Sequence record: KY555145.1
DNA length: 64,000 nt
Direction: 5' to 3' (one strand)
In this document: one piece after another, positions 3,878 to 60,142 of the stretch
Layout: each line of letters opens with the position of its first letter
Position numbering within the stretch: the stretch's first letter is position 1
Program-made: the position numbers and the translations under genes
The notes under the pieces: model-generated
The model's database searches: none
The model's input: only the letters and a program-made list of their open reading frames with translations
What the model was told of the DNA's origin: nothing

Positions 3878-3883
3878 CCAGAC

Positions 3884-3909
3884 GCCCCGGAAAATCTTCC
3901 GGGGCATTT
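3884..3909 (+). terminator. intrinsic terminator
   Basis: GCCCCGG/CCGGGGC stem then ATTT. Confidence 0.55.
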
Positions 3910-3937
3910 ACCTTTTGTTAAGGAATGGCCTCTAGGT
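3907..3937 (+). promoter_or_regulatory. early promoter with CtrA-type box
   Basis: TTTA-CCTTTTG-TTAA ... CTCTAGGT. Confidence 0.7.
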
Positions 3938-3986
3938 TAGCCCTTGCCGCCGGGCAATCCCGCCCGCCGCTTCGGAGTTTCGGCCC

Positions 3987-5776: not shown

Positions 5777-6076
5777 ATGAATCTTTTCGTTGTCGCCATT
5801 GACCCCGCCCTCATCCCTTCGGCCGCCGGCTTCGTGGTCGCCTCCCCCTACGGGTGCGGCAAGTGGCGCGCGTGCGTCGGGAGCGAGGCGGACATGATCG
5901 CGCTTCGCGACAAGATGCGCCGCGCGCACCCGGCCCCGGAAGGCTACAGCGTCCAGCCCCTGGCGTCGTTCCTGGCCTATCTGGAGACGGTCGGGCAAAG
6001 CCCCTACGACCAGTTTCGCGCCCGCGACGCCGCCGCCCGCATCCTTGACACCCTGACAACGCACCTCGCCGCCTAG
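5777..6076 (+). CDS. hypothetical protein
   Basis: AAGGA RBS, 99 aa. Confidence 0.75.
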   Translation: MNLFVVAIDPALIPSAAGFVVASPYGCGKWRACVGSEADMIALRDKMRRAHPAPEGYSVQPLASFLAYLETVGQSPYDQFRARDAAARILDTLTTHLAA

Positions 6077-6941: not shown

Positions 6942-7214
6942 ATGACCCGCGCTCAAGCCCTCGCCGACATGAACGCCCTTCCCGGTATCATCGCCTCCTT
7001 TGAGCGCGAGACGGGTGAATATCGCGTCACCCTGCGCTTTGGCCTGCTCCCCATGGGGCGCGGCGCCCAAGAGTGGATGCACGCGCGCCGCGAAGCCGTC
7101 GCCAGCTACAGCGACGACAAGGCCGACGCCCTGGCCACCGCCCGCGACATGTCCGCCCGCTGGGAGGCGATGAGCGCCGAAGAGCGTTCGCGCCTCTATC
7201 ACAACCCCGCCTAA
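6942..7214 (+). CDS. hypothetical protein
   Basis: 90 aa after promoter and hairpin. Confidence 0.7.
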   Translation: MTRAQALADMNALPGIIASFERETGEYRVTLRFGLLPMGRGAQEWMHARREAVASYSDDKADALATARDMSARWEAMSAEERSRLYHNPA

Positions 7215-7279
7215 AGCCCCCGCGCCGCCCTGGCCTTCGCCGGGGCGGCTCCCTCAACCCCTCGCAAGGATCGCACCCC

Positions 7280-7564
7280 ATGACCGCCCGTAAGCCCCTG
7301 ACCAAGGAACAAAAGGCCCGCCGCCGCGCGACCCGTCGCGCCGCCCGCCTCAACTGGTCGGATGAGCGCCGCGCCCGCGAATTCGAGCGTCAAGCCCGCT
7401 TCTTCCTGATGATCGCCACCCGCGCCCAAGGCGCCGGCCAAGGCCGGGAAGCCGCCCGCCTCGCCACGGCCGCACAACGCAAGGTGACTAGCTGGCGCAT
7501 GGCGCAAGCCTGCGCCCGAATTAACGCCCTGGCCGCGCATCCTTGGGCGGGGGTCGCCGCCTGA
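7280..7564 (+). CDS. basic hypothetical protein (copy 1)
   Basis: MTARKPLTKEQKARRR; duplicated at 9825. Confidence 0.75.
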   Translation: MTARKPLTKEQKARRRATRRAARLNWSDERRAREFERQARFFLMIATRAQGAGQGREAARLATAAQRKVTSWRMAQACARINALAAHPWAGVAA

Positions 7565-33150: not shown

Positions 33151-33167
33151 TGTCGTGAATCTTGACA
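33151..33167 (+). promoter_or_regulatory. late promoter motif upstream of head operon
   Basis: TGTCGTGAATCTTGACA. Confidence 0.75.
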
Positions 33168-33295
33168 TTCGGCGTATTTTTTGCTAGGTTCCCCAGCATC
33201 CCGATAGAGGTTGGCACATCCCGACGCCGCCAGCCGTCTCGCAACGCGACGGGTCGTCGCCCATACCACGGGGTCCGTGGGTAGAGAGAAACTGT

Positions 33296-49462: not shown

Positions 49463-50993
49463 GCCGCCCGAGGGCTTGGTCTCGACCGGCACGGCAGCGG
49501 CGACCTCGGGCGCGATCGGCACGATCGTCGTGTCGCCGTTCGACGGCAGCGTCTTCATCTCCTATCCGGGCAACGCGTCGGGCGCGATCGGCACGATCAT
49601 CGTCACCCCGCCGGCGGTGAGCCTCACCCACGGGCACGACCTGTCGATCGCCCTGCCCGGCCCGATTATCATCACCGCGCCTGAGGCTCAACCGCAGGCG
49701 GGCGCGACGGTCTCGGGTGATATCGGCACGATCATCGTCACCCCGCTCGACGGGCATGCCACCGGCGATACCGTCCTGGCTTCGGGGGATATCGGCACGA
49801 TCGTCGTCTCCACCCCGGACGGCGAGGCGACGGGACGTGGTCTGGGCTCGGGTGCGATCGGCACGATCGTCATCACCCCGCCGGCCGCGACCCTGACGGC
49901 GGAGGCCAACAAGGCGGTCGCCCTGCCCGGCCCGATCATCGTCACCCCGCCGACCGGCGTGGGTCAGGTCCCCGCTGCGGCGGCGGGTGATCTGGCGACG
50001 ATCACGATCACCAGCGTCCCCGAGGCGACGCTGTCGATCGGCCAGGACATCTCGGGCCAGATCGGAACCATCACGGTCACCCCGCCTGAGGCGTTCCCGC
50101 AAGGCTCGGTGTTCGTCGATCCGACCGACGAGATGGTCGTGCAGCTTCTGCCGCCGCAGGCCATCCTCTTCCAGGAAGCCACGGTCATCGTCGGCTTCCC
50201 GACGGTCTACCTGATCGCGCCCGAGGCCATCACCTATTCGCTGGCCGAGTTCGCCTCGATCACCTTGCTGCCGCCGGACGCCTATGTCGACGTTCCGCTG
50301 CCGCTGGGCAAGAACCGCATCCGCTATCGCCGCAACAACACCGCCGGGCTCGCTCCGACCAGCCTGCGGCCCAACGAAATCGCGCTGAACGAGACCGACG
50401 GCCTGCTGTTCACGCGTGACGGGTCCGGCGCGGTCAAGGCCACGCCGCTGGGCTTCCTGACTGGCGCAGGCGTGCCGCCGCCGGTCACCGACAACGGCAA
50501 GGTCCTGTCGGGCGGCCTGTCGTGGGAAACGCCCAACACCCGCTATCTCCTGCCGGTGCGCAACGCGCCGCCGGCTGGTACGCGCATCGCCCTGGGCGAG
50601 GGCGTCGTGGGGGTCTCGACCTTCACCCCGACGGTCGACGTCGTCTATACGCGGCCGTTCTTCGTGGCCAAGACCATCGACATCCAGGCGCTGTCGGTCG
50701 ACGTCGTCACCGCCGCCGCCGCCACCGCCGAACTTGGGCTGATCGGCTGGTCCCTGGCCGGCGCGCCCGGCGCGACCCTGGCTCTGGGCACGGTCAGCAC
50801 GGCGACCACGGGGATCAAGACCGCGACCGGCACGGCCGTGACCTTGACGCCGGGCTGGTATGCCTCCACCTTCAAGGTCACCGGCGCGGCGGGGGCGGCG
50901 TTCCGGGCTCCGACCGCACCGACGGCGATCGCGCCGGACTTCACCGTGACGCCGGGCGCCCCGGCGCCGGTCATGGCTGACCTGGAGGCCTAA
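47610..50993 (+). CDS. giant fibre protein, C-terminal part (frame open from 47097)
   Basis: Second allele continues into SGDIGTITV repeats and the C-terminal domain. Confidence 0.7.
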   Translation: MSSPNYVSGIGVGSNGKGGAFTNGGNGRIVISVITPTPGNASGTIGTVDVSGLDNFGLLIGVPTGDIGTIDVVVPVGQSGQPGFAEGPLTTIGVGPPETIPQAQAVVIVPINDQTSILIEPPINAPLEVPGEGICELPTIVVTGFESSLEAGATFDATDLGTILLVAPEADAVEIPPVETSGAIGTVIVTAPEASTQVIPPVETSGDIGTITVVTVTGAASWNNDVSTSGDIGTIVVTSPEADAVGDDLATGDLGTIIVTAPEGVAHQDANVSSDIGTISVYPIEGGQPADVVGDVPYIQVVTPGATVSASSGDDIALYADIGTIYLLQVYGQGYIISDDNFVHALPDPLIISITAAPEASARGDVHVVQSLPVINVDPPVPLSTGEGFVDGYTGDFIILVDPPVPLTELNANVNVAMPPPIVINGNDAETSLDVTIPFSDTAVFVSGPEALGLGFHGGEMGPPILVTPPEGGPEISVEIFVDPGTILVEAPRFHYIPPITVLPPEGVALDAHSAEASGDLGTITIGVPTGGYQANVAINLPLPTIFVNVPQVVVFASVAVSGDVGTITLTPPDATLTAGVDASFALPGPIVVSTPEATATAGSSAATSGALGTITITPPEGLVSTGTAAATSGAIGTIVVSPFDGSVFISYPGNASGAIGTIIVTPPAVSLTHGHDLSIALPGPIIITAPEAQPQAGATVSGDIGTIIVTPLDGHATGDTVLASGDIGTIVVSTPDGEATGRGLGSGAIGTIVITPPAATLTAEANKAVALPGPIIVTPPTGVGQVPAAAAGDLATITITSVPEATLSIGQDISGQIGTITVTPPEAFPQGSVFVDPTDEMVVQLLPPQAILFQEATVIVGFPTVYLIAPEAITYSLAEFASITLLPPDAYVDVPLPLGKNRIRYRRNNTAGLAPTSLRPNEIALNETDGLLFTRDGSGAVKATPLGFLTGAGVPPPVTDNGKVLSGGLSWETPNTRYLLPVRNAPPAGTRIALGEGVVGVSTFTPTVDVVYTRPFFVAKTIDIQALSVDVVTAAAATAELGLIGWSLAGAPGATLALGTVSTATTGIKTATGTAVTLTPGWYASTFKVTGAAGAAFRAPTAPTAIAPDFTVTPGAPAPVMADLEA

Positions 50994-50996
50994 GAC

Positions 50997-51665
50997 ATGC
51001 CGACCAACATCAACATGCCGCCGGACTCCACCCTGCTGGCGGACATCCTGCTCAATGGTGGGGCGGGCGCGCCGGCGGACCTGGAGGACGGCGAACTCTA
51101 CATCGACGAGGCGGGCCGCACGCTCTATGTCGAGACCGTGGTCGGCGTCCAGCCTATCCCACTCGACGTCGGCTATGTCCCGCGCCGCCCCAGCGGCACG
51201 CCGCTCGACTACGTGGTCAACAAGACCGAGACGGGCGCCGAGTGGGGGCCGCTGGACGGCGGCGCGGGCGGCTCGCCGTTCGATGCGGCCGAGTTCCGCG
51301 TCCCCGGTCTGGCTCCCACGGGCCTGGACACGGTCGTCATGCCCGGCGCGTCCGGTGGGCTGGGATTGTTCGAGATGCCGATCCAGGACGTGCTCCTGAG
51401 CATCCGCGTACACGCTTCGGCCGGCGCGGGGTCCGTCACCGTCGCGCTCTACCCGTTCAACGGCTCGCTGGGCTCGTTGATCTTCAGCCAGACCCTGACG
51501 TTCGCCGCGCCCGAAGCCCAGGTCGTGCCTGTGTCCGTGCCTCTCCCTCCCGGAATCTACGCCTGGGTCTGGACCGGGACCGATGGGCTGACCCTCGACG
51601 CGGTCAAGGGATCGTTGCCCTGGGCGACGCGCGAGCAAGTCCATCCCGTGGCGATGAAGTTCTAA
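50997..51665 (+). CDS. fibre-associated protein
   Basis: GGAGG RBS; DGELYIDE..LY motif. Confidence 0.7.
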   Translation: MPTNINMPPDSTLLADILLNGGAGAPADLEDGELYIDEAGRTLYVETVVGVQPIPLDVGYVPRRPSGTPLDYVVNKTETGAEWGPLDGGAGGSPFDAAEFRVPGLAPTGLDTVVMPGASGGLGLFEMPIQDVLLSIRVHASAGAGSVTVALYPFNGSLGSLIFSQTLTFAAPEAQVVPVSVPLPPGIYAWVWTGTDGLTLDAVKGSLPWATREQVHPVAMKF

Positions 51666-51667
51666 AG

Positions 51668-52444
51668 ATGGCCATCCAGAACCCCCATTCCACGACGCCG
51701 GGCGTGATGCCGCACCTGACTCCCGGAGAGGTCGGCGTCAACAAGGCCGACGACATTCTCTGGTTCCGCTCCCAGGGCCGGCGCGTGCCGATCATCCTGA
51801 GCGACCTCACCCGCGCCCCGCCGGCGGACGGCTATGTGGGCGCGCCCCTGGCCCTGGAGGGCGGCGCGCCGGTCTGGAACGTCAAGCTCTTGCCGTCCTC
51901 GATTGTCGCCGGCGCGGTCAAGGTCGACCTGCCGCCCGCCGCCGGCCTGCACGCCATGCCCAGCGTCCTGCTCCAAGGCCTGGGAACCGACCGCGTCCTG
52001 GCGGCCAACGACCTGGACCTCACCCCCTTCTATGTCCGCTCCGACTCCATCACCCTGACCCATCTGGCCTTCAGCGTGCGCTCGGCGGGCGCGCCGGCCA
52101 TGCGCGTGGGGATCGTCGATAGCTTCGGCGTCGTCCAGGCCGACATCCTGGTCGCCGCGCCGGTCGTGGGGGCCAATGTCGTGGCGCTCTCGCCGGTCCT
52201 GACCCTCCAGCGCGGCGTCTACCGCACCATCCTGGCGACGACCGGAGCGGTGACCGTGGGGATCGCCACGGGCGCGCGCATGGAACAGGGCTGGGACATC
52301 ATCGCCGACGCCCCGTCGTTCATCCACGGCTACAGCGGCAGCAAGAACACCGCTGGCGGCATCGGGAGCCTGCCGGCGCTGACCCCGCGCCGCGACCCCG
52401 CGCCGGGCCAGGATCACGCCGTCCTCCTGCGCTGGACGGCGTGA
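51668..52444 (+). CDS. fibre-associated protein
   Basis: PGEVGVNKADDILWF motif, paralogous C-domain. Confidence 0.7.
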   Translation: MAIQNPHSTTPGVMPHLTPGEVGVNKADDILWFRSQGRRVPIILSDLTRAPPADGYVGAPLALEGGAPVWNVKLLPSSIVAGAVKVDLPPAAGLHAMPSVLLQGLGTDRVLAANDLDLTPFYVRSDSITLTHLAFSVRSAGAPAMRVGIVDSFGVVQADILVAAPVVGANVVALSPVLTLQRGVYRTILATTGAVTVGIATGARMEQGWDIIADAPSFIHGYSGSKNTAGGIGSLPALTPRRDPAPGQDHAVLLRWTA

Positions 52445-52453
52445 ATCTTGACA
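52439..52453 (+). promoter_or_regulatory. late promoter motif
   Basis: GCGTGAATCTTGACA, TTAACC downstream. Confidence 0.7.
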
Positions 52454-52506
52454 CTCGGTCGAAATACGGTTAACCTGCGCGCTCATCTGGAGTTTCGAGC
52501 GCCAAC

Positions 52507-52773
52507 ATGGCCGAGCTTGTCCGCATCTATCACCCCGAGACGAACGAGCCGTTCGACGTGATTCCGTCGACCGCCGAACGTCTGCGCCTGGGTCAAGGTC
52601 TGGACGGTCTGGTGTGGCTCTCGCAGCCCTTCTCCCGCGCCGCTGCCGAAGAGCCGGCGCCGGAAGCCCCCAAGGGGCGAGGTCGTAAGCGCGTCGCCGC
52701 GCCCGTCTCGGACGAAGCCGAAGACGATGGCTGGCGTGACGCGCCGACCGAGGACGCTTCCGAAGCCGCGTAA
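52507..52773 (+). CDS. hypothetical protein
   Basis: 88 aa. Confidence 0.7.
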   Translation: MAELVRIYHPETNEPFDVIPSTAERLRLGQGLDGLVWLSQPFSRAAAEEPAPEAPKGRGRKRVAAPVSDEAEDDGWRDAPTEDASEAA

Positions 52774-52817
52774 GGCGCTTCCCCGTCCACTCTGCTGAAA
52801 TTCGGTCTCAGTCCCAT

Positions 52818-52893
52818 GTCGGTCTAGCTCATGGGGTAGAGCGGCGGTCTCCAAAACCGCGCGTGGCAGGTTCGAGTCCTGCGACCGGCGCCA
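52818..52893 (+). tRNA. tRNA-Trp(CCA)
   Basis: Cloverleaf, loop CT-CCA-AA, CCA end. Confidence 0.9.
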
Positions 52894-52898
52894 TTTCC

Positions 52899-52973
52899 GC
52901 GTCCATCGTATATGGGTTATTGCTTCGCGTTGCCAACGCGACGAACCGGGTTCGAGTCCCGGTGGACGCTCCA
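52899..52973 (+). tRNA. tRNA-Gly(GCC)
   Basis: Loop TT-GCC-AA, CCA end. Confidence 0.9.
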
Positions 52974-52979
52974 ATTCAT

Positions 52980-53053
52980 GCGGGTATAGCTCAAAGGGAG
53001 AGCTACTGCCTTCCAAGCAGAAGATGCGGGTTCGAGCCCCGCTATCCGCTCCA
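52980..53053 (+). tRNA. tRNA-Gly(TCC)
   Basis: Loop CT-TCC-AA, CCA end. Confidence 0.9.
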
Positions 53054-53074
53054 AATTTTTCTTCCACGACAAGC

Positions 53075-53103
53075 TTGACAGCCGTCGAGTTTTGTGAGAG
53101 CCT
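53075..53103 (+). promoter_or_regulatory. sigma70-type promoter, tRNA operon 1
   Basis: AAATTTTT UP tract, TTGACA, TTGTGAGAGCCT. Confidence 0.65.
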
Positions 53104-53112
53104 TCAACCACT

Positions 53113-53175
53113 ATGACGCACCTCCTGACCCGTTACGAACGCGAGGCCACCGGCCTCGATACCACCACCGCCTAA
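53113..53175 (+). CDS. leader peptide 1 (20 aa)
   Basis: MTHLLTRYEREATGLDTTTA overlapping the terminator hairpin. Confidence 0.6.
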   Translation: MTHLLTRYEREATGLDTTTA

Positions 53176-53202
53176 AAGCGGTTCTGGTAACCGAGGCCTT
53201 TT
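53152..53202 (+). terminator. attenuator terminator 1
   Basis: GGCCTCG/CGAGGCC outer stem, ACCA/TGGT and ACCGC/GCGGT inner stems, TTTT. Confidence 0.6.
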
Positions 53203-53209
53203 GTCATGT

Positions 53210-53287
53210 GGCCCGGTCGTCTAGCGGTTTGCAGGATTCGTGACTTTCAATCACGAGAGCGGAGTTCGAGTCTCCGTCGGGCCTCCA
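53210..53287 (+). tRNA. tRNA-Glu(TTC)
   Basis: Loop CT-TTC-AA, CCA end. Confidence 0.9.
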
Positions 53288-53308
53288 CCCAAAGTCTCCT
53301 CTGAGCTT

Positions 53309-53383
53309 GGTGCGTTCGTATATCGGTCAATACTCCGGATTGTCGATCCGGCAAGAGGGGTTCGATTCCCCTACGCACCGCCA
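53309..53383 (+). tRNA. tRNA-Asp(GTC)
   Basis: Loop TT-GTC-GA, CCA end. Confidence 0.9.
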
Positions 53384-53395
53384 GGGCTCCTCCCT

Positions 53396-53554
53396 ATGCC
53401 TCTTCAGTCGGGTTCGAGCGACGCCGTCGTCTCGCACAACATCGCCAAGCTGATCGACGAAGGCTACTCCAAGGAGCAGGCCGTGGCGATCGCCCTGTCC
53501 CAGGCGCGCAAGCCGCGCCGTCCGAAGGTCTCGCGCGGCTCACGCCGGCGCTGA
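53396..53554 (+). CDS. small basic protein (52 aa)
   Basis: [31 protein letters not shown], recalled phage family. Confidence 0.7.
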
Positions 53555-53623
53555 CCTCGCCTCGCTAAAGCACCCCAGTTCCCGGCCTCGTCGTGAGGCC
53601 GCCTGCGGTCGCGCGAGGCTTCC

Positions 53624-53848
53624 ATGACCTTTCTTGATCTTCGTTCGCAGTCGAGCGCCGCGCTCCTGCGCCATGTGTCTTCCCGATCCCCGATGGCGGA
53701 AGCGGCTCGCACCGAGTTGCTGACCCGAGGCCTCGTCCCGCTCCTCACGCGGCACAACGGCTGGCGCCTCGCCCCGAGCGAGCCCTTTCCGCAGCATCTC
53801 ATCCCGCGCCCCGATCCGCTCGCGAGGTTCACGTGGCGGGCGGGATGA
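53624..53848 (+). CDS. hypothetical protein
   Basis: GAGG RBS, 74 aa. Confidence 0.55.
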   Translation: MTFLDLRSQSSAALLRHVSSRSPMAEAARTELLTRGLVPLLTRHNGWRLAPSEPFPQHLIPRPDPLARFTWRAG

Positions 53849-53868
53849 AGATTTTTCTCACGACATGC

Positions 53869-53897
53869 TTGACATCCGTCTGAAGTTGTGAGAGCCT
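53869..53897 (+). promoter_or_regulatory. sigma70-type promoter, tRNA operon 2
   Basis: TTGACA ... TTGTGAGAGCCT, same design as 53075. Confidence 0.65.
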
Positions 53898-53991
53898 GTC
53901 CAACGTCACGGGTCACGACACTCCTCGTAGTGCAAAAGCGCGATCCTTCGTTATTCCCAGGCCGCCAGCGGGCGGCCGTTCGAGAGTCATC

Positions 53992-54138
53992 ATGTTCGCC
54001 TTGTCGCATAACAGCCTGAGCCTGAAAGCCGCCTCTCCGGCGACGCTTTCGCTTGCGCTGTCTCCGACGGCCGCGACGGCCGCGACGCCCTCGACCAAGC
54101 CGACCCACTCGGCCTCGCACTCGACGGATCACCTCTAG
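53992..54138 (+). CDS. leader peptide 2 (48 aa)
   Basis: MFALSHNSLSLKAASPATLSLALSPTAATAATPSTKPTHSASHSTDHL. Confidence 0.65.
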   Translation: MFALSHNSLSLKAASPATLSLALSPTAATAATPSTKPTHSASHSTDHL

Positions 54139-54203
54139 GGTATCTCGTCTCAGGTGCAGGCCTTGGAGCCGCACCCGCTACCAACATCCTGTTGACCTAG
54201 CGC

Positions 54204-54240
54204 AAGGCGGCTCCCAGCAAGGAGACCGCCTTTTCTTTTT
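54204..54240 (+). terminator. attenuator terminator 2
   Basis: AAGGCGGCTCC/GGAGACCGCCTT then TTCTTTTT. Confidence 0.8.
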
Positions 54241-54252
54241 CGCGTTGATCAT

Positions 54253-54328
54253 CGGGGTGTAGCTCAGTCGGTAGAGCGCTCGGTTCGGGACCGAGAGGCC
54301 GTGGGTTCGAGTCCCGCCACCCAGACCA
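54253..54328 (+). tRNA. tRNA-Pro(CGG)
   Basis: Loop TT-CGG-GA, CCA end. Confidence 0.9.
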
Positions 54329-54335
54329 ACGCCAT

Positions 54336-54410
54336 CGGGATGTAGCTCAGCGGTAGAGCGCGCGGCTGGGGGCCGCGAGGCCGCAGGTTCGAGACCTGCC
54401 ACCCCGACCA
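54336..54410 (+). tRNA. tRNA-Pro(GGG)
   Basis: Loop CT-GGG-GG, CCA end. Confidence 0.88.
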
Positions 54411-54415
54411 ACAAC

Positions 54416-54488
54416 GCTGCTGCGCCTGGATCGGCGCCGGCCCCTTGGTATGGGGAAGTAGAAGGTTCAATTCCTTCCAGCAGCACCA
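54416..54488 (+). tRNA. atypical tRNA-Thr(GGT)
   Basis: Perfect 7-bp acceptor G1-C72/C2-G71, loop TT-GGT-AT, aberrant D-arm. Confidence 0.6.
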
Positions 54489-54493
54489 ACAAC

Positions 54494-54563
54494 GCCGATG
54501 CCTCTAGGAGGACACGTCTTTCGTAATGACGTCAGGTGGGTGCGATCCCCACTTTCGGCTCCA
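54494..54563 (+). tRNA. atypical tRNA-Thr(CGT)
   Basis: GCC/GGC acceptor, ACGTC/GACGT stem, TT-CGT-AA closed by a T.T pair, small D-arm, CCA end. Confidence 0.55.
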
Positions 54564-54600
54564 TCAAGAGATGATCAAGGAGAGATCAGACGAAACAAAT

Positions 54601-54687
54601 GGATGTGTCACCTCAGTGGCGAGAGGACCGGGCTCTTAATCCGGCAGCGAAAGCTCATCGTGGGTTCGAGTCCCACCACATCCTCCA
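54601..54687 (+). tRNA. tRNA-Lys(CTT) with long variable arm
   Basis: Loop CT-CTT-AA; variable arm AGC-GAAA-GCT. Confidence 0.8.
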
Positions 54688-54692
54688 ATAAT

Positions 54693-54783
54693 GCACGAGT
54701 GACCCGAGTGGCGAAGGGCGTCGACTTTTAATAGACTAGGCGTCCGCGCCTCACCGAGGGTTCGAGTCCCTCCTCGTGCTCCA
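54693..54783 (+). tRNA. tRNA-Lys(TTT) with long variable arm
   Basis: Loop CT-TTT-AA; variable arm AGGCG-TCCG-CGCCT. Confidence 0.8.
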
Positions 54784-54789
54784 GGTTGT

Positions 54790-54873
54790 GCGAAAGTGGC
54801 GGAACGGCAGACGCACTGGTCTCAGGTACCAGCGACTTCGGTCATGAGGGTTCGAATCCCTCCTTTCGTACCA
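54790..54873 (+). tRNA. tRNA-Leu(CAG)
   Basis: Class II cloverleaf, CCA end. Confidence 0.9.
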
Positions 54874-54880
54874 ACGACAT

Positions 54881-54965
54881 GCCGGTCTGGCGGAAATGGC
54901 AGACGCAGTGGCTTCAAGTCCCACCGCCTTCGGGCGTCCCGGTTCGAGGCCGGGGACCGGCACCA
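54881..54965 (+). tRNA. tRNA-Leu(CAA)
   Basis: Class II cloverleaf, CCA end. Confidence 0.88.
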
Positions 54966-54970
54966 TTTGA

Positions 54971-55059
54971 TGCGAAGTGGCGGAACTTTGGTAGACGCAC
55001 CGGCATGAGAGGCCGGCGCCCTTCGGGGCGTGAGGGTTCGAGTCCCTTCTTCGCGACCA
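54971..55059 (+). tRNA. tRNA-Leu(GAG)
   Basis: Class II cloverleaf, loop AT-GAG-AG. Confidence 0.88.
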
Positions 55060-55066
55060 ATATAAT

Positions 55067-55138
55067 GCCGGACGGCGCAGGCGCGCGGGGGAGGTTGTGT
55101 CCCTCCTTGGCTCCGATCGTTACGGAGGTTCGGTTCCA
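55067..55138 (+). tRNA. atypical tRNA-His(GTG)
   Basis: GGAGG/CCTCC stem, loop TT-GTG-TC; non-canonical T-loop ATCGTTA. Confidence 0.55.
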
Positions 55139-55142
55139 TTAC

Positions 55143-55213
55143 GGGGTATGCGCAGGGCGCAGGCATCCTTTGCAAGGAAGTCGGGGTGGGTTCGAGTCCC
55201 ACATACTCCACCA
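55143..55213 (+). tRNA. tRNA-Ala(TGC)
   Basis: G3:U70 identity pair, loop TT-TGC-AA. Confidence 0.82.
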
Positions 55214-55217
55214 ACAT

Positions 55218-55305
55218 GGTAGGTTGGCTGAGAGGCCGAAGGCGCCCGTTTCGAAAACGGGAGGACCGCAAGGTTCCGTGGGTTCGAATCCCACACCTAC
55301 CTCCA
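55218..55305 (+). tRNA. tRNA-Ser(CGA)
   Basis: Class II cloverleaf. Confidence 0.9.
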
Positions 55306-55309
55306 ACAT

Positions 55310-55397
55310 GGATGTATGGCTGAGAGGCCGAAGGCGCCCGCTTGGAAAGCGGGTGAACCGCAAGGTTCCGTAGGTTCGAATCCTACTGCATCCGCCA
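55310..55397 (+). tRNA. tRNA-Ser(GGA)
   Basis: Class II cloverleaf. Confidence 0.9.
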
Positions 55398-55401
55398 ATA
55401 T

Positions 55402-55488
55402 GGTAGGTGGTTCCGGCCTGGGGCCGGACCCGGTTGCTAACCGGCCGGAGCCGCAAGGCTTGGGGTTCGATTCCTCCTCCTACCGCCA
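55402..55488 (+). tRNA. tRNA-Ser(GCT)
   Basis: Class II cloverleaf. Confidence 0.85.
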
Positions 55489-55531
55489 CTTCGATGTTGA
55501 CACCCGCAACGCGGCCTGTCATACGTCACGA

Positions 55532-55745
55532 CAGAGCGAACACCCCCCGGCCGGGTTTGTTGTCATACCGGGTCGTCACGCCCCGTCGGGGCTCTAGTAG
55601 CTCTTCGTGTGGAGTTTTCCGCCTCCCTCCCAGACAAGGAGGCGGACCCAACCAACATCGCGATCTCCCGTGATCGTCGGCGACGGGCGCCGTCAGAGAC
55701 CTTTGCCTGCGCGGCTTCGCTGCGGCCCTGGTCTCGTCCCGACCA
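55532..55745 (+). ncRNA. candidate structured small RNA
   Basis: Own promoter (TTGACA 55497, CATACG 55520); several hairpins; no convincing ORF. Confidence 0.4.
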
Positions 55746-55764
55746 AATTTTTTCGTCGTGGTGC

Positions 55765-55793
55765 TTGACACTGCGAAACTGTTCTGCTAGGGT
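55765..55793 (+). promoter_or_regulatory. sigma70-type promoter, tRNA operon 3
   Basis: AAATTTTTT, TTGACA, GCTAGGGT. Confidence 0.7.
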
Positions 55794-55800
55794 TCACGTC

Positions 55801-55899
55801 ATGAGCAAGACCTATCGTCAATTTGTGCGCCAGATTCAGGTCGTCCGGAATATCCGGGCGGGCCGCTCGCGCATGGCTGACGAAGGGTTCCGGGACTAG
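55801..55899 (+). CDS. leader peptide 3 (32 aa)
   Basis: MSKTYRQFVRQIQVVRNIRAGRSRMADEGFRD, nearly leaderless ATG. Confidence 0.7.
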   Translation: MSKTYRQFVRQIQVVRNIRAGRSRMADEGFRD

Positions 55900-55928
55900 G
55901 TCCCACTCCACGTTCAACCAGTTTCGCG

Positions 55929-55960
55929 AAGGCCCGCCTGGACACCCAGGCGGGCCTTTT
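55929..55960 (+). terminator. attenuator terminator 3
   Basis: AAGGCCCGCCTGG/CCAGGCGGGCCTT then TT. Confidence 0.85.
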
Positions 55961-56001
55961 CGCATTTCAGCTTCAGATCACGGAGATCGCCAAACAGACA
56001 C

Positions 56002-56086
56002 GGATGCTTAAAGCTGGAGGGCTCCAGCCGGGGACTGTAAATCCCCTCTCTTCGGAGGAGTGGTTCGATCCCACAAGCATCCACCA
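56002..56086 (+). tRNA. tRNA-Tyr(GTA)
   Basis: Loop CT-GTA-AA, long variable arm. Confidence 0.85.
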
Positions 56087-56091
56087 ACCAC

Positions 56092-56167
56092 GGACTCGTA
56101 GCTCAGCAGGTAGAGCGCCGGCTTGAAACCCCGGAGGTCGGAGGTTCGACTCCTCCCGTTTCCACCA
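56092..56167 (+). tRNA. tRNA-Phe(GAA)
   Basis: Cloverleaf, two acceptor mismatches. Confidence 0.85.
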
Positions 56168-56172
56168 ACAAC

Positions 56173-56248
56173 GCCCGATGAGCCAGATGGGAAGGCGCCG
56201 CCGCGACATGGCGGGATTGAGAAGGTTCGATTCCTTCATCAGGCACCA
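56173..56248 (+). tRNA. tRNA-Val(GAC)
   Basis: Loop GC-GAC-AT. Confidence 0.85.
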
Positions 56249-56250
56249 AT

Positions 56251-56326
56251 GCAAGTGTAGCTCAGTTGGTAGAGCAGCGGACCGATAATCCGCCCGTCCC
56301 TGGTTCGAGTCCAGGCATTTGCACCA
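56251..56326 (+). tRNA. tRNA-Ile(GAT)
   Basis: Loop CC-GAT-AA. Confidence 0.88.
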
Positions 56327-56333
56327 ATTCTGA

Positions 56334-56408
56334 TGTGGCATAGCTCAGGGGTAGAGCGCGCGCTTGATAAGCGTGAGGACGGGGGTTCGAAGCCCTCTGC
56401 CACTACCA
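56334..56408 (+). tRNA. tRNA-Ile(GAT)
   Basis: Loop TT-GAT-AA. Confidence 0.88.
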
Positions 56409-56441
56409 GTTTCCAGGCCGGCGGAGATGCGCCGGACCTGA

Positions 56442-56517
56442 TGGCGTTTAGCATAGTGGGAGTGCAGGGGTGTCACATACCTCGATCGAACTGGTTCGAT
56501 TCCAGTAACGCCAACCA
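56442..56517 (+). tRNA. tRNA-Val(CAC)
   Basis: Loop GT-CAC-AT. Confidence 0.85.
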
Positions 56518-56522
56518 ATCGT

Positions 56523-56596
56523 TGAGGGTTCGTCTAACGGTAGGACGGCTGGGTCTGGTCCAGCTAATCTAGGTTCGAGTCCTAGCCCCTCATCCA
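56523..56596 (+). tRNA. tRNA-Gln(CTG)
   Basis: Loop GT-CTG-GT. Confidence 0.87.
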
Positions 56597-56604
56597 AATA
56601 CTGT

Positions 56605-56680
56605 TCAGGGTTAGTTTAGCTGGTAAAACACTGGGTTTTGGCCCCGGCGTCGCTAGGTTCGAAGCCTGCACCCTGATCCA
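56605..56680 (+). tRNA. tRNA-Gln(TTG)
   Basis: Loop TT-TTG-GC. Confidence 0.85.
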
Positions 56681-56691
56681 TTTGAGTTTAT

Positions 56692-56766
56692 TCCAGTCAA
56701 TGCACAAGGTGTGCAGCGGCACTGTTAATGCCTGTGAGCCCGGTTCGATTCCGGGGTCTGGAGCCA
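56692..56766 (+). tRNA. tRNA-Asn(GTT)
   Basis: Loop CT-GTT-AA. Confidence 0.87.
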
Positions 56767-56792
56767 ACACGCCGGCCGAGGCCGGCACAAGC

Positions 56793-56875
56793 GCCCTGGT
56801 AACCGAGGGGGACTACGAATCCCTTAGTCGTAGCAGGAGTTGAAAAGGGTGGTTCGAATCCACTCCAGGGTGCCA
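56793..56875 (+). tRNA. atypical tRNA-Arg(ACG)-like, D-arm-less
   Basis: 7-bp acceptor, GGGGA/TCCCT with loop CT-ACG-AA, canonical T-loop, CCA end. Confidence 0.5.
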
Positions 56876-56882
56876 AATTCAT

Positions 56883-56965
56883 AGCGCGCAGGCCGAGCAG
56901 GATCATCGTCAGGCGTCGCCCTCCGAAGGCGAAGAGGCCCGGTTCGAGTCCGGGGCGCGCTGCCA
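56883..56965 (+). tRNA. tRNA-Arg(CCG) with enlarged D-loop
   Basis: Loop CT-CCG-AA; 17-nt D-loop. Confidence 0.8.
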
Positions 56966-56968
56966 TTC

Positions 56969-57046
56969 GCGCAGGTAGCTCAACGGACCCAGAGCGACCG
57001 TCTTCTACACGGAGGGTTGGGGGTTCGAATCCCTCCCTGCGCGCCA
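56969..57046 (+). tRNA. tRNA-Arg(TCT)
   Basis: Loop CT-TCT-AC. Confidence 0.9.
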
Positions 57047-57327
57047 AGCTTGACGAGTGATGCCGAATCGCTCAGCCTCCCGATCGGCTCTCGATGGGCC
57101 TCCACAAACCCAGTTCCGGACGATCTTCGAACGCGGCCTGCCGTGGAGGGGTGCTGGAAGGGCCGGGGTTGTGGAAACCGTCGAGCATCTCCTACATCCG
57201 GATCGGGCCTCCTGGGGGCTCCTCCGGTCAACCAGGGCCTGACCCGACCCCGGAGATGCGCCGTCTACGATCACCCAGGACCGTCCTGGCGGTGGAAAGG
57301 GTCTGAAATTTTTCTGGCGCTGATGTG

Positions 57328-57460
57328 TTGACACTCCTCGGAGGTTCGTCTAAAACCAGCAGCGTCAGAGCGGCGTTGGACCACGAGGTCCGCCGCGAGC
57401 TTCTGCGTTGTCGTCAGGAACGGCCCGTCAGCAATCCCGCTGGCGGGTCGTTTCGTTTTG
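57328..57460 (+). ncRNA. candidate ~100-nt small RNA with promoter and AAUCCC-loop terminator
   Basis: TTGACA, 17 bp, TAAAAC; hairpin CCCGTCAGC-AATCCC-GCTGGCGGG then T-rich tail. Confidence 0.5.
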
Positions 57461-57494
57461 GGCGCAATGCGACGTTCAGTCCAACCATGGGTAG

Positions 57495-57511
57495 TGTCAT
57501 GAATCTTGACT
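57495..57511 (+). promoter_or_regulatory. late promoter motif
   Basis: TGTCATGAATCTTGACT. Confidence 0.65.
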
Positions 57512-57579
57512 TTCGGCACTTATTCCGGTAGCTTTCCCGACATCAGCAAACGCTCACAAGTCGGGGACCGAGAGCCGTC

Positions 57580-57996
57580 ATGTCGCAAGACCACAACGGC
57601 TCGTCCTCGGGCCAAGAACGCATCTACCAGAAACTGGATGAGCTTGGCTCCATGCACGCGCGCACCCGTGAAGATATTGCCCGCATCCAGGAGATGATGC
57701 GAGCGGTCGGTTCGTCGCAGGAGCGGATCGAAAAGCGCCAGGATCATTTCGAGCGCGAAATCTGGCGTGAGATGGAAGACCGCGCCGCGCGCACGAGCGC
57801 CCAACTCGACGAAATCAAGAGCCACACCAACCTGCGCATCGAGGAGATCGAGGCCAAGGTCGACACGATCCGCGAGGAACGGATCGCCGAGAAGGCCCAG
57901 TGGCGCGGCCCCGAGAAGGCCATCGCCGCCCTGGTCGCCGTCGCCGGGGCCATCGCCGCCTTCGCCACGATCCTCACTTTCCTGAAGGGACACTAA
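57580..57996 (+). CDS. coiled-coil protein with C-terminal TM helix (holin/XhlA-like candidate)
   Basis: Coiled coil plus AIAALVAVAGAIAAFATILTFL. Confidence 0.6.
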   Translation: MSQDHNGSSSGQERIYQKLDELGSMHARTREDIARIQEMMRAVGSSQERIEKRQDHFEREIWREMEDRAARTSAQLDEIKSHTNLRIEEIEAKVDTIREERIAEKAQWRGPEKAIAALVAVAGAIAAFATILTFLKGH

Positions 57997-58088
57997 GGCT
58001 TATAGTCAAGCTTGCGCACCTGCGGCCAGAAGTCGCGCTTCTTGACACCCGATCTGGGCCGGCATAACCATAGGGCCATCGTTCCTGG

Positions 58089-58310
58089 GTGGAGTTTTCC
58101 CTAATGGCTGTCGCGCTTACTGTCGTCTCGGTTGAGACCGAATCTACCATCCAAGGTGTTGACCCCGACGCGGCGCATGGGCGCCTGATCGAGGTCCTGC
58201 ATACCGCCGCAGAAGCGGGTCTTGGGGAAATGACGTTGGAAGTCAAAGCGGAGATCGCGGCGCTGCTCCAGCAGGCGTCCGTGGAACTCTCCCACTGCCG
58301 GCCGGTGTAG
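58089..58310 (+). CDS. hypothetical protein
   Basis: 73 aa; start may be ATG 58104. Confidence 0.5.
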   Translation: MEFSLMAVALTVVSVETESTIQGVDPDAAHGRLIEVLHTAAEAGLGEMTLEVKAEIAALLQQASVELSHCRPV

Positions 58311-58344
58311 GGGTCCCGTAAATCGCCATCCCAGAGGGAGCGAC

Positions 58345-59211
58345 GTGTCCGAGTCTGCTGAGTTCAACCCGCTCGACCAAAATCAGTTCCCTCCTCGCCT
58401 CACCAAGGCTGCTGCGCGACAGGCGCGGCGCCAGGAGCGCAGCCAGAAAAAGGACCCCACGGCCAACAAGCCGAACTACAAGGCGCTCGAAGCCAAGACC
58501 GAACGCCAACGTCGCTATATCCAGGCCCTCAAGGCCGGTGAAAGCGTCATCGCCATTGGCGGAGCCGGCACGGGGAAGACCTATATCCCGTCCCGGCTCT
58601 TCGCCAAGAAGCTGATCGAGGCGAAGATCGAACGCCTGATCATCGCCCGCGTCACCGCCTCGCGCCCCAAGCACGCCCTGGGCTTCCTGCCCGGCAAGCT
58701 GGAAGCCAAGCTCGCGCCGTGGCTCGTCCCGGTGATCGAGGGCGTCAAGGCCGAGATGAACGCCCAGACCTACACGCAGTTGCAGGAAGCCGGCAAGATC
58801 GAGTTCGCCTCGTTCGAGCACATGCGCGGGCGGACTTTCGCCGAGTGCTGCGTCCTGCTCGACGAGGCCCAGAACGCCGACTACAAGGACCTGAAGATGG
58901 TCCTGACCCGCTGGGGCGAGAACGCCCAATACGCGGTCACCGGCGACATCGACCAGATCGACGTCGACGATTCGGGCCTGGAGACGGTCGTCGACATCGT
59001 CGAGACCCACGACATCCCGATCCACGTGATCGAGTTCACCGACGAGGACGTGGTCCGCTCGCCCATGGCCAAGGCCTGGGTCAAGGCGTTCTCCGCCCAC
59101 GAAGGCAAGGACGAACGGGCGCGGCGCTTCCACCGTCCCGCTGTCAGGAATCTTGACGTCCTGCCAGCTTTTATCGATAATGGCCGTGTCACGAAACCCG
59201 TGGCGTCGTGA
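58345..59211 (+). CDS. phoH: PhoH-family ATPase
   Basis: GGAGTGKT Walker A, LGFLPG, HMRGRTF, LDEAQNA, TRWGE, GDIDQID, DVVRS. Confidence 0.93.
   Translation: MSESAEFNPLDQNQFPPRLTKAAARQARRQERSQKKDPTANKPNYKALEAKTERQRRYIQALKAGESVIAIGGAGTGKTYIPSRLFAKKLIEAKIERLIIARVTASRPKHALGFLPGKLEAKLAPWLVPVIEGVKAEMNAQTYTQLQEAGKIEFASFEHMRGRTFAECCVLLDEAQNADYKDLKMVLTRWGENAQYAVTGDIDQIDVDDSGLETVVDIVETHDIPIHVIEFTDEDVVRSPMAKAWVKAFSAHEGKDERARRFHRPAVRNLDVLPAFIDNGRVTKPVAS
59142..59158 (+). promoter_or_regulatory. late promoter motif inside phoH
   Basis: TGTCAGGAATCTTGACG. Confidence 0.55.
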
Positions 59212-59228
59212 CAAAGACGTAGCGCACC

Positions 59229-59750
59229 ATGGCCTTCACCTTCGTTGTTGAGACTGGCGCCGGGGACCCGGCCGCGAACTCGTACTGCGACGTGCAGTTC
59301 GCGGACGACTACATCTACGCCAATGTCTACGCCAACACCGCCTGGGACGCGCTGGATCAGGACGGCAAGGAACGCTTCCTGGTCCGGGCGTCCAAGTACC
59401 TGGACCGGTCGATCGCCTGGGCCGGGGAGAAGGTCGATGAGGACTCCGGCCTGCGCTGGCCGCGCGCTGGCGTCTATGACGTCGACGGCTTCCTGATCCC
59501 CAGCGACGCCATCCCGCAGCAACTCATGGAGGCCACCGCCGAGATGGCGGCGGCCCTCATGAACAACGACTGGACCTCGCCGCAGACCACGCGCGGCATG
59601 AAGGAAATCCAGGTCGACGTCATCGAACTGAAGTTCGACAGCGAAATCCAGCGCGGCTCCATGCCCGACATCGTCATGTCGATCCTCGAAGGTCTGGGGG
59701 TCGTCAAGACCGGCACCCGTCCGGCCTTCAAGAAGATCATCCGCCACTAA
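59229..59750 (+). CDS. head-tail adaptor (DnaT-like family)
   Basis: ANSYCDV..ADDY..RASKYLD..GLRWPR..IPQQLMEAT. Confidence 0.8.
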   Translation: MAFTFVVETGAGDPAANSYCDVQFADDYIYANVYANTAWDALDQDGKERFLVRASKYLDRSIAWAGEKVDEDSGLRWPRAGVYDVDGFLIPSDAIPQQLMEATAEMAAALMNNDWTSPQTTRGMKEIQVDVIELKFDSEIQRGSMPDIVMSILEGLGVVKTGTRPAFKKIIRH

Positions 59751-60142
59751 TGGCCCTCGAAGCCTTCATCCGTTCGCAGGTCGTCGTCGCCTTCAACCAG
59801 CTAGACGACATCGCCAAGCGTTGGACCTACGTCCAGCGCTCGGGCGATCCGGTGCGTGACGTCGAGACCGGCGTGACCACCTACCCGTCGACCGAGATCG
59901 TCATTCCCAAGGCGGTCAAGGTCCGGTTCAAGAAGGACGAGAAGGACGCCCACGGCCAGACCCTGGTGGGCGAGAAGGTCCTGTTCCCCCGCGTCTACCT
60001 GCCGGGGGATTTCGAGACCGCCACGTCCGACTATCTCGTCGACGAGAAGGACATCATCTGGGAGATCATGAGCGACCTGGGCGACCCGGCCTCGGCGCTG
60101 GCGATGTTCCAGGTCCGCAGCACGCGGAAGAAGACCCCGTGA
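59750..60142 (+). CDS. head-closure/head-tail joining protein
   Basis: Position and size. Confidence 0.6.
   Translation: MALEAFIRSQVVVAFNQLDDIAKRWTYVQRSGDPVRDVETGVTTYPSTEIVIPKAVKVRFKKDEKDAHGQTLVGEKVLFPRVYLPGDFETATSDYLVDEKDIIWEIMSDLGDPASALAMFQVRSTRKKTP

Follow-up and report, generated by a model that had tools for sequence, protein, structure and literature searches.

How does a phage that carries many tRNA genes determine when they are expressed? The genome of Caulobacter phage Ccr29 (KY555145.1), which is phiCbK-like, raises this question. We analyzed a window of 64,000 nucleotides (nt) of this genome, in which window coordinates are genome coordinates. The tRNA genes lie on the + strand and are arranged as blocks: Trp-Gly-Gly, Glu-Asp, block B, and block C. 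The element under study, leader 2, is the 385 nt that precede block B. Phage tRNAs are usually viewed as constitutive aids to codon usage or as a reserve against the tRNA nucleases of the host. Our analysis suggests that leader 2 is probably a ribosome-mediated (leader-peptide) transcription attenuator of block B.

Block B (54253 to 55488, + strand) contains 14 tRNA genes, assigned by ARAGORN, a relaxed ARAGORN threshold, Rfam, and homology. Their order is Pro CGG, Pro GGG, Thr GGT, Thr CGT-like, Lys CTT, Lys TTT, Leu CAG, Leu CAA, Leu GAG, His GTG-like, Ala TGC, Ser CGA, Ser GGA, and Ser GCT. The first of them, tRNA-Pro (54253), begins 12 nt after the T-run of a putative terminator (54231 to 54240), and this distance is too short for a promoter. 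Therefore, block B would be transcribed only by read-through.

Upstream of this terminator is a 48-codon open reading frame (ORF), Ccr29_gp089 (53992 to 54138, + strand), which encodes MFALSHNSLSLKAASPATLSLALSPTAATAATPSTKPTHSASHSTDHL and has its TAG stop codon at 54136 to 54138. An invariant Shine-Dalgarno-like GAGAG (53982 to 53986) lies 6 to 10 nt 5' of the ATG at 53992. After Met1, 44/47 residues are Pro, Thr, Lys, Leu, His, Ala, or Ser, which are the amino acids of block B. This score is a unique maximum, reached by one of the 57,906 stop-free 47-residue windows in the six frames of the 64 kb (null, 20.5±5.6). A preliminary description of the locus had named a composition like that of random GC-rich ORFs as a refutation, and at the amino acid level the match exceeds chance. 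The match is also specific to block B, because only 2/47 residues are in the block C set and 1/47 is in the Glu/Asp set. The residues outside the block B set are Met, Phe, Asn, and Asp, one each, and Gly, Arg, Val, Glu, Ile, and Gln are absent from all 48 codons in a genome that is 66% GC. When His is left out of the set the score falls to 40/47, which is matched by four low-complexity off-frame windows, one of them exceeding it at 41. Therefore, the composition of the leader 2 ORF alone is strong but not overwhelming evidence.

The way in which this ORF changes between phages adds to the composition match. Our close set was ten alignable phages (Shapirovirus and Poindextervirus), which are 93% identical at leader 2. 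Ccr10 and Ccr2 are 100% identical to Ccr29 in the region, and phiCbK, Karma, Magneto, Swift, Ccr5, and RBC57 are 93 to 98% identical. Whole-genome identity between Rogue and phiCbK is 62.6% (PMC3556154), and so the leader 2 region is conserved far above the genome-wide level. The ORF and the positions of its start and stop are kept in the ten close relatives, with a single 9-nt, in-frame indel. Variation is seen at 14 codon positions, with just three or four synonymous changes among them. At in-set positions, 13/13 replacements remain in the set, compared to 47% expected for random nonsynonymous single-base changes. These replacements are L/T, T/S/K, L/P/S, A/P, A/L, A/T, T/K/S, H/T, and L/H, several of which need two or three base changes. 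Because synonymous changes are few and replacements all stay in the set, amino acid identity appears to be free whereas set membership is not. This pattern would be unlike that of a folded protein and would fit a peptide constrained solely by which tRNAs it calls for.

Five further lineages have an ORF of 39 to 45 codons at the homologous place, between a promoter and hairpins that are followed by tRNA-Pro. The peptides are MTFSTHKPSTLKPATGAASLAHASLLTPATSKPSLSRSL in Colossus/CcrPW, MTRIHTTLPTAKPASTGALTLASWPASSKPLLRHSAVLA in the Bertelyvirus phages CcrSC/BL9, and VTTLSHKLSLKSAPSALLSLAHAPATLKSTPATVASTSETFS in Bajun (38/41 in the set). Analogous leader ORFs occur in the Brevundimonas phages Kikimora/Gurke and Bambus, and three Brevundimonas-phage lineages were counted. 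Identity of these peptides to the Ccr29 leader is only 27 to 42%, but 86 to 94% of their residues are in the set (null, 44±11%). In nine of nine phages tested, the leader ORF was the top or near-top window of its own locus. Out-of-set residues concentrate at the C-terminal end, where the RNA makes a helix that we call P1 (see below). Searches by peptide alignment retrieved no further relatives, as there is no sufficiently conserved stretch, and Ruegeria phage vB_RpoS-V10 had no convincing leader ORFs 5' of its tRNAs.

These observations bear on the simplest alternative, that gp089 is an ordinary small protein gene with its own terminator, that GC bias makes it rich in A, S, T, P, and L, and that its adjacency to tRNA genes is a coincidence. 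The ORF is annotated as a coding sequence in all records compared, although only as "hypothetical protein." It also matches the profile hidden Markov model of PHROG 12742 over residues 1 to 48 (E = 2.5e-24). However, PHROG assigns this family no function, and the leader peptides of Colossus and Kikimora fall outside it. PHROG 12742 is probably a grouping of phiCbK-type leader peptides that carries no functional information. The low-complexity windows that equal the score without His are the other point in favor of a protein gene. Such a gene would have to lack six common amino acids in 48 codons despite the high GC content, and combine a substitution pattern like a nonsynonymous-to-synonymous ratio (dN/dS) above 1 with strict retention of the set. 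The enrichment of rare codons described below would also be unexplained. Furthermore, its terminator would silence 14 promoterless tRNA genes as well, and the coincidence would have to repeat itself in leader 3 of Ccr29 and in three leaders of Erythrobacter phage XM05, with other amino acid sets. We regard an ordinary protein gene as very improbable.

The preliminary description had made a codon-level match between leader 2 and the tRNAs of its cluster its headline. Its codon tally was exact on recount: Leu TTG1/CTG3/CTT2/CTC1, Ser TCG6/AGC2/TCT2, Pro CCG3/CCC1, Thr ACG5/ACC2, Lys AAA1/AAG1, His CAC3/CAT1, and Ala GCC6/GCG4. With strict wobble, the block B tRNAs can read 38/47 of these codons, compared to 37.3±1.6 expected for the same peptide written in phage codon usage (P=0.44), and the headline mostly does not survive this comparison. 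The absence of CTA, TTA, TCA, CCA, and ACA had been noted as part of the signal, with GC bias as a partial explanation, but GC-rich codon usage fully predicts it. There is a real codon-level signal other than the one claimed, made up of isoacceptor sampling, rare-codon enrichment, and a co-occurrence of AAA with tRNA-Lys(UUU). All 14 block B isoacceptors are sampled by leader 2 codons (P≈0.008). Rare codons (CTT, TTG, TCT, AAA, and CAT, a set chosen post hoc) occur seven times compared to 1.9 expected (P≈0.001). AAA, which is 4.5% of Lys codons, is found at differing positions in the leaders of all three lineages with tRNA-Lys(UUU) but is missing from the other three, whose only Lys tRNA is tRNA-Lys(CUU); the numbers are small (n=6 lineages), and Fisher P≈0.05 ignores phylogeny. 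The CcrSC/BL9 leader carries TGG, and its tRNA block terminates in tRNA-Trp. No co-variation of TCA and CTA codons with Ser(UGA) and Leu(UAG) tRNAs was found across the lineages.

The RNA around the ORF has the parts expected of an attenuator. At its 5' end is a promoter-like element (53869 to 53894, + strand) consisting of TTGACA (53869 to 53874), 11 nt, and TTGTGAGAG (53886 to 53894). An exact copy of this 26-nt pattern lies at 53075, before the Glu/Asp tRNAs, and a looser copy lies at 55765, before leader 3. The 64-kb window has five matches compared to 0.55 expected. The element is invariant in the ten relatives, and the homologous place in Colossus has TTGACA-N11-CTGTGAGAG. The 53869 element may serve as the promoter of leader 2. 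A further looser copy (TTGACATTCGGCGTATTTTTTGCTAG) is at 33162 to 33187, remote from the tRNA region. In phiCbK, about 570 bp that are extra compared to Ccr29, with a minus-strand ORF (gp336), lie just 5' of the leader 2 promoter (3383 to 3880 of its compared locus, corresponding to about 53850 in the window), and the promoter and leader are intact.

Downstream of the promoter-like element are a series of helices, all on the + strand. In the 90-nt 5' untranslated region (UTR), 14 nt 5' of the ATG, is a hairpin with the sequence GGCCGCC-AGCG-GGCGGCC (53960 to 53977; ΔG, -14.9 kcal/mol). It is 100% paired in the ten phages, three of which show a compensatory C-G to A-U change, there are also two G-U changes, and it may be a pause or timing hairpin for RNA polymerase. 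Helix P1 (54111 to 54162; regions 1:2) pairs the last nine codons (54111 to 54134) with 54138 to 54162, so that the stop codon is at the hairpin loop. It has a ΔG of -26.4 kcal/mol, is part of the minimum free energy (MFE) structure, and is 94 to 100% paired in the ten phages, with one compensatory pair at 54129/54142 in inner P1. A hairpin of different sequence whose loop holds or adjoins the stop codon is found in CcrSC/BL9, Kikimora/Gurke, Bambus, and Bajun.

The second strand of P1 can also pair downstream. The preliminary description had reported a hairpin between GGTGC (54153 to 54157) and GCACC (54171 to 54175) that follows the stop at 54138, and we confirmed it. This anti-antiterminator (GGTGC.GGC...GCC GCACC, 54153 to 54175; regions 2:3) has a ΔG of -12.9 kcal/mol and is invariant in the ten phages. 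CcrSC/BL9 carries an equivalent GGGTGC...GCACCC pair. Also borne out was the 8-bp pairing of GGAGCCGC (54165 to 54172) with the terminator arm GCGGCTCC (54207 to 54214). It closes an antiterminator domain (54165 to 54214; regions 3:4; ΔG, -26.0 kcal/mol) that is in the MFE structure and encloses two nested hairpins at 54176 to 54202 (ΔG, -7.6 kcal/mol), in which three phages have a compensatory A-U to U-A change at 54183/54193. A perfect 8-bp antiterminator complement occurs in 0.8% of dinucleotide shuffles (P≈0.008). The antiterminator arm is the complement of the 5' arm of the terminator, and so the two pairings are mutually exclusive. The intrinsic terminator (54204 to 54240) consists of an 11-bp stem (54204 to 54214/54221 to 54232) and the T-run TTTTCTTTTT (54231 to 54240). 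It has a ΔG of -17.9 to -18.5 kcal/mol, is invariant in the ten phages, and is homologous to a hairpin annotated as a rho-independent terminator (TransTermHP) in phiCbK, Karma, and Swift.

The same layout recurs with different sequence in Kikimora/Gurke, Bambus, and Bajun, and partially in CcrSC/BL9 and Colossus/PW. It consists of a stop codon in or at a loop, an alternative 2:3 helix, an antiterminator that surrounds an inner hairpin and pairs with the 5' arm of the terminator, a U-tract terminator, and, immediately after it, tRNA-Pro. In its broad outline, four to five lineages have this order of parts. An antiterminator enclosing an inner hairpin is also found in Kikimora, Bambus, Bajun, and Colossus.

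This much structure could mean that the RNA itself is what matters. Leader 2 might be a structured untranslated 5' leader or a small RNA, with a phage or host antitermination factor providing temporal control and the ORF being incidental. The nucleotides after the stop codon are almost invariant in the ten phages, several hairpins have compensatory changes, and the substitutions in the ORF show no synonymous-site bias. Shuffled sequences also fold less stably than the leader (z = -3.3 over 341 nt and -4.4 over the final 146 nt). However, an untranslated RNA leaves unexplained why six lineages retain the frame, start, and stop at 27 to 42% peptide identity, why replacements are confined to seven amino acids, and why three different leaders in two phage groups mirror their own tRNA blocks. 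Furthermore, an Rfam cmscan of 50000 to 60000 (E≤1) returned only tRNA-clan and chance matches and none within 53869 to 54240. We consider an untranslated RNA improbable.

If leader 2 is an attenuator, how would the ribosome throw the switch? The preliminary description had left the switching after the stop codon open. It had missed helix P1, and in silico the competition of P1 with the GGTGC..GCACC hairpin supplies an answer for Ccr29. With a 29-nt ribosome footprint placed as a mask on each codon in turn, we calculated equilibrium pair probabilities. With the footprint over most of codons 4 to 38, the probability of the Ccr29 terminator was about 0.1 to 0.4 and that of the antiterminator was about 0.6 to 0.9. 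From codon 39 (CAC, 54106) to the stop, the terminator rose to 0.91 to 0.99, and the GGTGC..GCACC hairpin appeared, being in the MFE structure whenever the mask covers region 1. The energies are -52 kcal/mol for P1 with the antiterminator domain, -38 kcal/mol for the 2:3 hairpin with the inner hairpins and terminator, and -26 kcal/mol for the antiterminator domain alone. These models suggest that the ribosome acts by opening P1 rather than by covering RNA after the stop codon, and that region 2 then traps the antiterminator arm.

The following sequence of events can be proposed. Transcription would start at the promoter-like site at 53869, and a ribosome would translate the 48-codon leader, in which the first 38 or so codons are nearly all for the seven amino acids of the 14 downstream tRNAs. 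If all codons were decoded fast, the ribosome would reach the last 10 or so and melt P1 (54111 to 54134/54138 to 54162). The released GGTGC...GGC would pair with GCC...GCACC (54153 to 54175), the antiterminator arm would be hidden, and the terminator (54204 to 54240) would then form, leaving the tRNA genes off. If charged Pro, Thr, Lys, Leu, His, Ala, or Ser tRNA were scarce, the ribosome would stall upstream and P1 would stay closed. GGAGCCGC (54165) could then pair with GCGGCTCC (54207), blocking the terminator and allowing RNA polymerase to enter the tRNA block. The net effect would be negative feedback, in which tRNA is made when the cell is short of tRNA. The predicted default for an untranslated leader 2 is read-through.

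Leader 2 is not alone in Ccr29. Leader 3 (55765 to 55966) has the promoter-like site at 55765, an ORF at 55801 to 55899 that encodes MSKTYRQFVRQIQVVRNIRAGRSRMADEGFRD, and a terminator at about 55931 to 55966. It is followed by block C, which contains Tyr-like, Phe, Val, Ile, Ile, Val, Gln, Gln, Asn, and three Arg tRNA genes. The ORF is unannotated in Ccr29 and in most database records matched. In its core, YRQFVRQIQVVRNIR, 15/15 residues are Y, F, V, I, Q, N, or R, with all seven used, which is the unique top score of 95,203 windows. The core has diverged in eight other phages (YRNNVRQIRVRQFNL, YRQNVQNIRVVRFYR, and others), but 14 or 15 of 15 residues are still in the set. Within the leader 3 ORF is a copy of the 3' arm of the terminator, and it co-varies with the terminator's 5' arm; the pairs are CGGGCGGGCC/GGCCCGCC in Ccr29 and GGACGGGCC/GGCCCGTCC in CcrSC and Bajun. 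When a 17-base pattern common to the leader 3 copies was searched in IMG/VR, it returned known isolates and five unrelated chance matches without tRNAs.

Leader 1b (53075 to 53205) has the promoter motif at 53075, an ORF at 53113 to 53175 that encodes MTHLLTRYEREATGLDTTTA, and a terminator hairpin at 53152 to 53198, followed by tRNA-Glu and tRNA-Asp. Its ORF is conserved at 20 or 21 codons, and the last codons and the stop are inside the 5' arm of the terminator. Leaders 3 and 1b, like three leaders of phage XM05 described below, resemble leader 2 in the order TTGACA promoter, short ORF, hairpin or terminator, and tRNA block, and in a peptide composition that mirrors the block. However, the amino acid sets differ. 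Leaders 3 and 1b would be nearly leaderless mRNAs with an antiterminator or terminator arm within the ORF, whereas in leader 2 the 90-nt 5' UTR is structured and the helices form a relay past the stop codon. As a candidate leader for the Trp-Gly-Gly block, we looked at gp087 (52507 to 52773), which is 5' of it, and rejected it. Only 26/87 of its residues are W, G, E, or D, which is unremarkable, and in Kikimora a block of the Trp-Gly-Gly type directly follows an ordinary gene.

Erythrobacter phage XM05 (152 kb) partitions its tRNAs otherwise, and three leaders match its own blocks. The positions given here are those in the XM05 stretch compared. The first leader, MFTQTALHLLTQTPLYCQWQYSCSSL, precedes Ser, Tyr, Leu x3, Thr, His, Gln x2, Ser, Cys, and Trp tRNAs, and its 22/25 matching residues, which include two Cys, one Trp, and two Tyr, make it the unique top of 14,587 windows. 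The second, MTYGFTKRDRREGDERGFTS, matches at 14/19 residues a block of Lys x2, Gly x2, Asp, Glu x2, Arg x2, and Phe. The core of the third, VVAFMNNPAPAIMVPAV, matches at 16/17 a block of Pro x2, Met, Val, Ile, Asn, Val, and Ala. Their short ORFs are at 4839 to 4934, 5915 to 5977, and about 7315 to 7395, with a clear terminator after the first. XM05 groups Gln and Tyr with Leu, Ser, and Thr, and Q and Y are present in the leader of that block; Ccr29 instead has them in block C, and leader 2 contains neither. The preliminary description had suggested relatives that lack particular tRNAs as a check, and the XM05 leaders bear it out by following their own grouping. Two other features of the XM05 region were noted. 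A match to GOLLD RNA (RF02032) at 3897 to 4381 (120 bits, under the gathering score of 150; E = 2e-32) contains an embedded tRNA and adjoins the tRNA region. At about 7059 to 7260, between two tRNA blocks, is a tandem duplication of an element of about 110 nt (ATGTTCCCGATCGGGATCAGCCCCGG...) that ends in a tRNA-like T-arm/acceptor/CCA and then an A10 run.

The block B genes are not all equally certain. ARAGORN at default settings found 11 of those listed in the preliminary description (Pro CGG/GGG, Thr GGT, Lys CTT/TTT, Leu CAG/CAA/GAG, Ala TGC, and Ser CGA/GGA). Ser GCT (55402 to 55488) was recovered at a lower ARAGORN threshold only, together with an Rfam tRNA-clan match, and the sole support for Thr CGT (about 54492 to 54563) is alignment to Colossus tRNA-Thr(CGT). 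His GTG (55065 to 55148) is doubtful because it is a weak match and possibly a degenerate or decayed gene. Several tRNA genes are mislabelled or missed in annotations (54492 to 54563, 55402 to 55488, 56002 to 56087, 56692 to 56766, and 56793 to 56965). Those missed include a tRNA-Tyr(GTA)-like gene homologous to Kikimora Tyr, the Thr(CGT)-like and Ser(GCT) genes, and two further Arg genes (CCT and CCG). An ARAGORN call of Ile(aat) has the anticodon loop CTGTTAA and is actually Asn(GTT). The two tRNAs with Lys anticodons (CUU, 54601 to 54687; UUU, 54693 to 54783) are 87 and 91 nt long, with a stem-loop variable arm and a class II shape, and they are kept at the same position throughout the phage subfamily. 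In bacteria this shape is normally confined to Leu, Ser, and Tyr tRNAs. Because the leucyl- and seryl-tRNA synthetases do not recognize the anticodon, these long tRNAs may or may not carry Lys.

Several points weigh against leader 2 as an attenuator. Taken together, the codons are no more readable than codon usage would predict, and the six GCC Ala codons are unreadable by tRNA-Ala(UGC) with strict wobble. Leader 2 retains four His codons, although the Ccr29 His tRNA is weak. The match of leader 1b is also weak, with two Glu and one Asp conserved in 20 codons. The 2:3, antiterminator, and terminator helices are invariant in the ten alignable phages and so have no covariation support there; compensatory changes are confined to the 5' UTR hairpin, the inner hairpin, and inner P1. 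The equilibrium-mask switch is clear only in Ccr29, Colossus, and Bambus and is flat or erratic in Rogue, Kikimora, and CcrSC, and we did not count mask results from lineages beyond the first three as support. When the RNA is cut before region 5, the Ccr29 antiterminator is favored at any ribosome position, and therefore the off state must be kinetic. The 2:3 hairpin might form first, after which the local terminator could close faster than the long-range antiterminator. Finally, translation of the ORF, the activities of the promoter and terminator, read-through, and the direction and kinetics of the switch are all deduced from sequence and folding.

Some of these points would fit an alternative in which translation of the leader matters but is read out differently or with the opposite polarity. 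Rho or nuclease protection, or pre-tRNA processing, might be the downstream event, or stalling might lower tRNA transcription. The composition match requires codon sensing only and is silent on what happens downstream. Colossus/PW and CcrSC/BL9 (Bertelyvirus) have no convincing U-tract after the last hairpin, and equilibrium folding is inconsistent among lineages. Set against this are textbook terminators directly before the first tRNA in Ccr29, the Brevundimonas phages, and Bajun, and an exact overlap of the antiterminator with the terminator arm. In leader 3 the segment inside the ORF co-varies with the 5' arm of the terminator, as in the Ccr29 pair GGGCGGGCC/GGCCCGCC and the CcrSC and Bajun pair described above, and a rule in which stalling gives read-through is compatible with all three leader types. 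We think that a different read-out is unlikely.

The preliminary idea of an ORF tuned to its tRNA block and followed by a terminator, antiterminator, and anti-antiterminator is supported by the composition, the substitutions, the six lineages, the sister leaders, and XM05. The parts are in place, they are complementary and conserved, and the peptide composition matches the tRNA block and co-varies with tRNA content. Therefore, reading leader 2 as an attenuator is partly supported, at the level of amino acids and anatomy and in part at the level of codons, and the mechanism is a well-founded inference. With slightly less confidence, we also favor a wider proposal for the CbK-like phages of Caulobacter, Brevundimonas, and Erythrobacter, in which each tRNA block would be under its own leader peptide that samples exactly the tRNAs of that block. 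If so, the phage would gauge host decoding for each amino acid group and activate only the tRNA blocks needed. Such a demand-driven switch would mean that the phage keeps watch on how well its host can decode and makes up only the shortfall, and it would explain why this phage subfamily conserves the way in which its tRNA genes are divided into blocks. It would also be without precedent, both as leader-peptide attenuation of tRNA genes and as an attenuator that senses seven or eight amino acids together, and it would extend this form of control beyond metabolic operons and provide natural sensors of many charged tRNAs together.

How does leader 2 compare with systems that are already known? 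Proteobacterial leader-peptide attenuators (trp, his, leu, thr, ilvGMEDA, ilvBN, and pheA) and pheST have a short ORF with regulatory codons and a terminator before the genes, as leader 2 does. Both have mutually exclusive hairpins. In the classical systems the place of the ribosome decides between them, with stalling leading to read-through, and leader 2 is predicted to work likewise. The relay of 1:2, 2:3, 3:4, and 4:5 helices resembles the six-segment his leader, and there are precedents for sensing more than one amino acid in thr (Thr and Ile) and ilvGMEDA (Leu, Val, and Ile). However, the classical members regulate amino acid biosynthesis enzymes or aminoacyl-tRNA synthetases, whereas leader 2 would regulate 14 tRNA genes. 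They have a run of one to three amino acids, and leader 2 has seven, with all 14 isoacceptors, over about 38 codons. An untranslated trp leader terminates, whereas untranslated leader 2, with its five segments, is predicted to read through. Leader 2 is also phage encoded and does not match an Rfam leader family, unlike the His, Leu, Thr, and Trp leaders. T-box riboswitches, too, couple translation-related genes to the supply of a charged tRNA by a choice between terminator and antiterminator. They bind one uncharged tRNA directly and have no ORF, whereas leader 2 has a conserved ORF and no Rfam T-box match.

Among tRNA gene clusters, a long cyanobacterial array, termed a "cryptic tRNA gene operon," is reported to contribute to survival under translational stress (PMC8421152). 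It is on a bacterial chromosome rather than in a phage, and the text of that report mentions no attenuation, leader, or terminator. The phiCbK genome paper reports only tRNAs and predicted terminators (PMC3556154). A full-text literature search, with incomplete coverage, found no description of leader-peptide control of tRNA genes. Leader 2 looks like a known attenuation mechanism in a new use, that of matching tRNA production to demand. Judged by our models, it would be new in its target (tRNA genes), in the number of amino acids that it senses (seven), in its predicted default state, and in being encoded by a phage.

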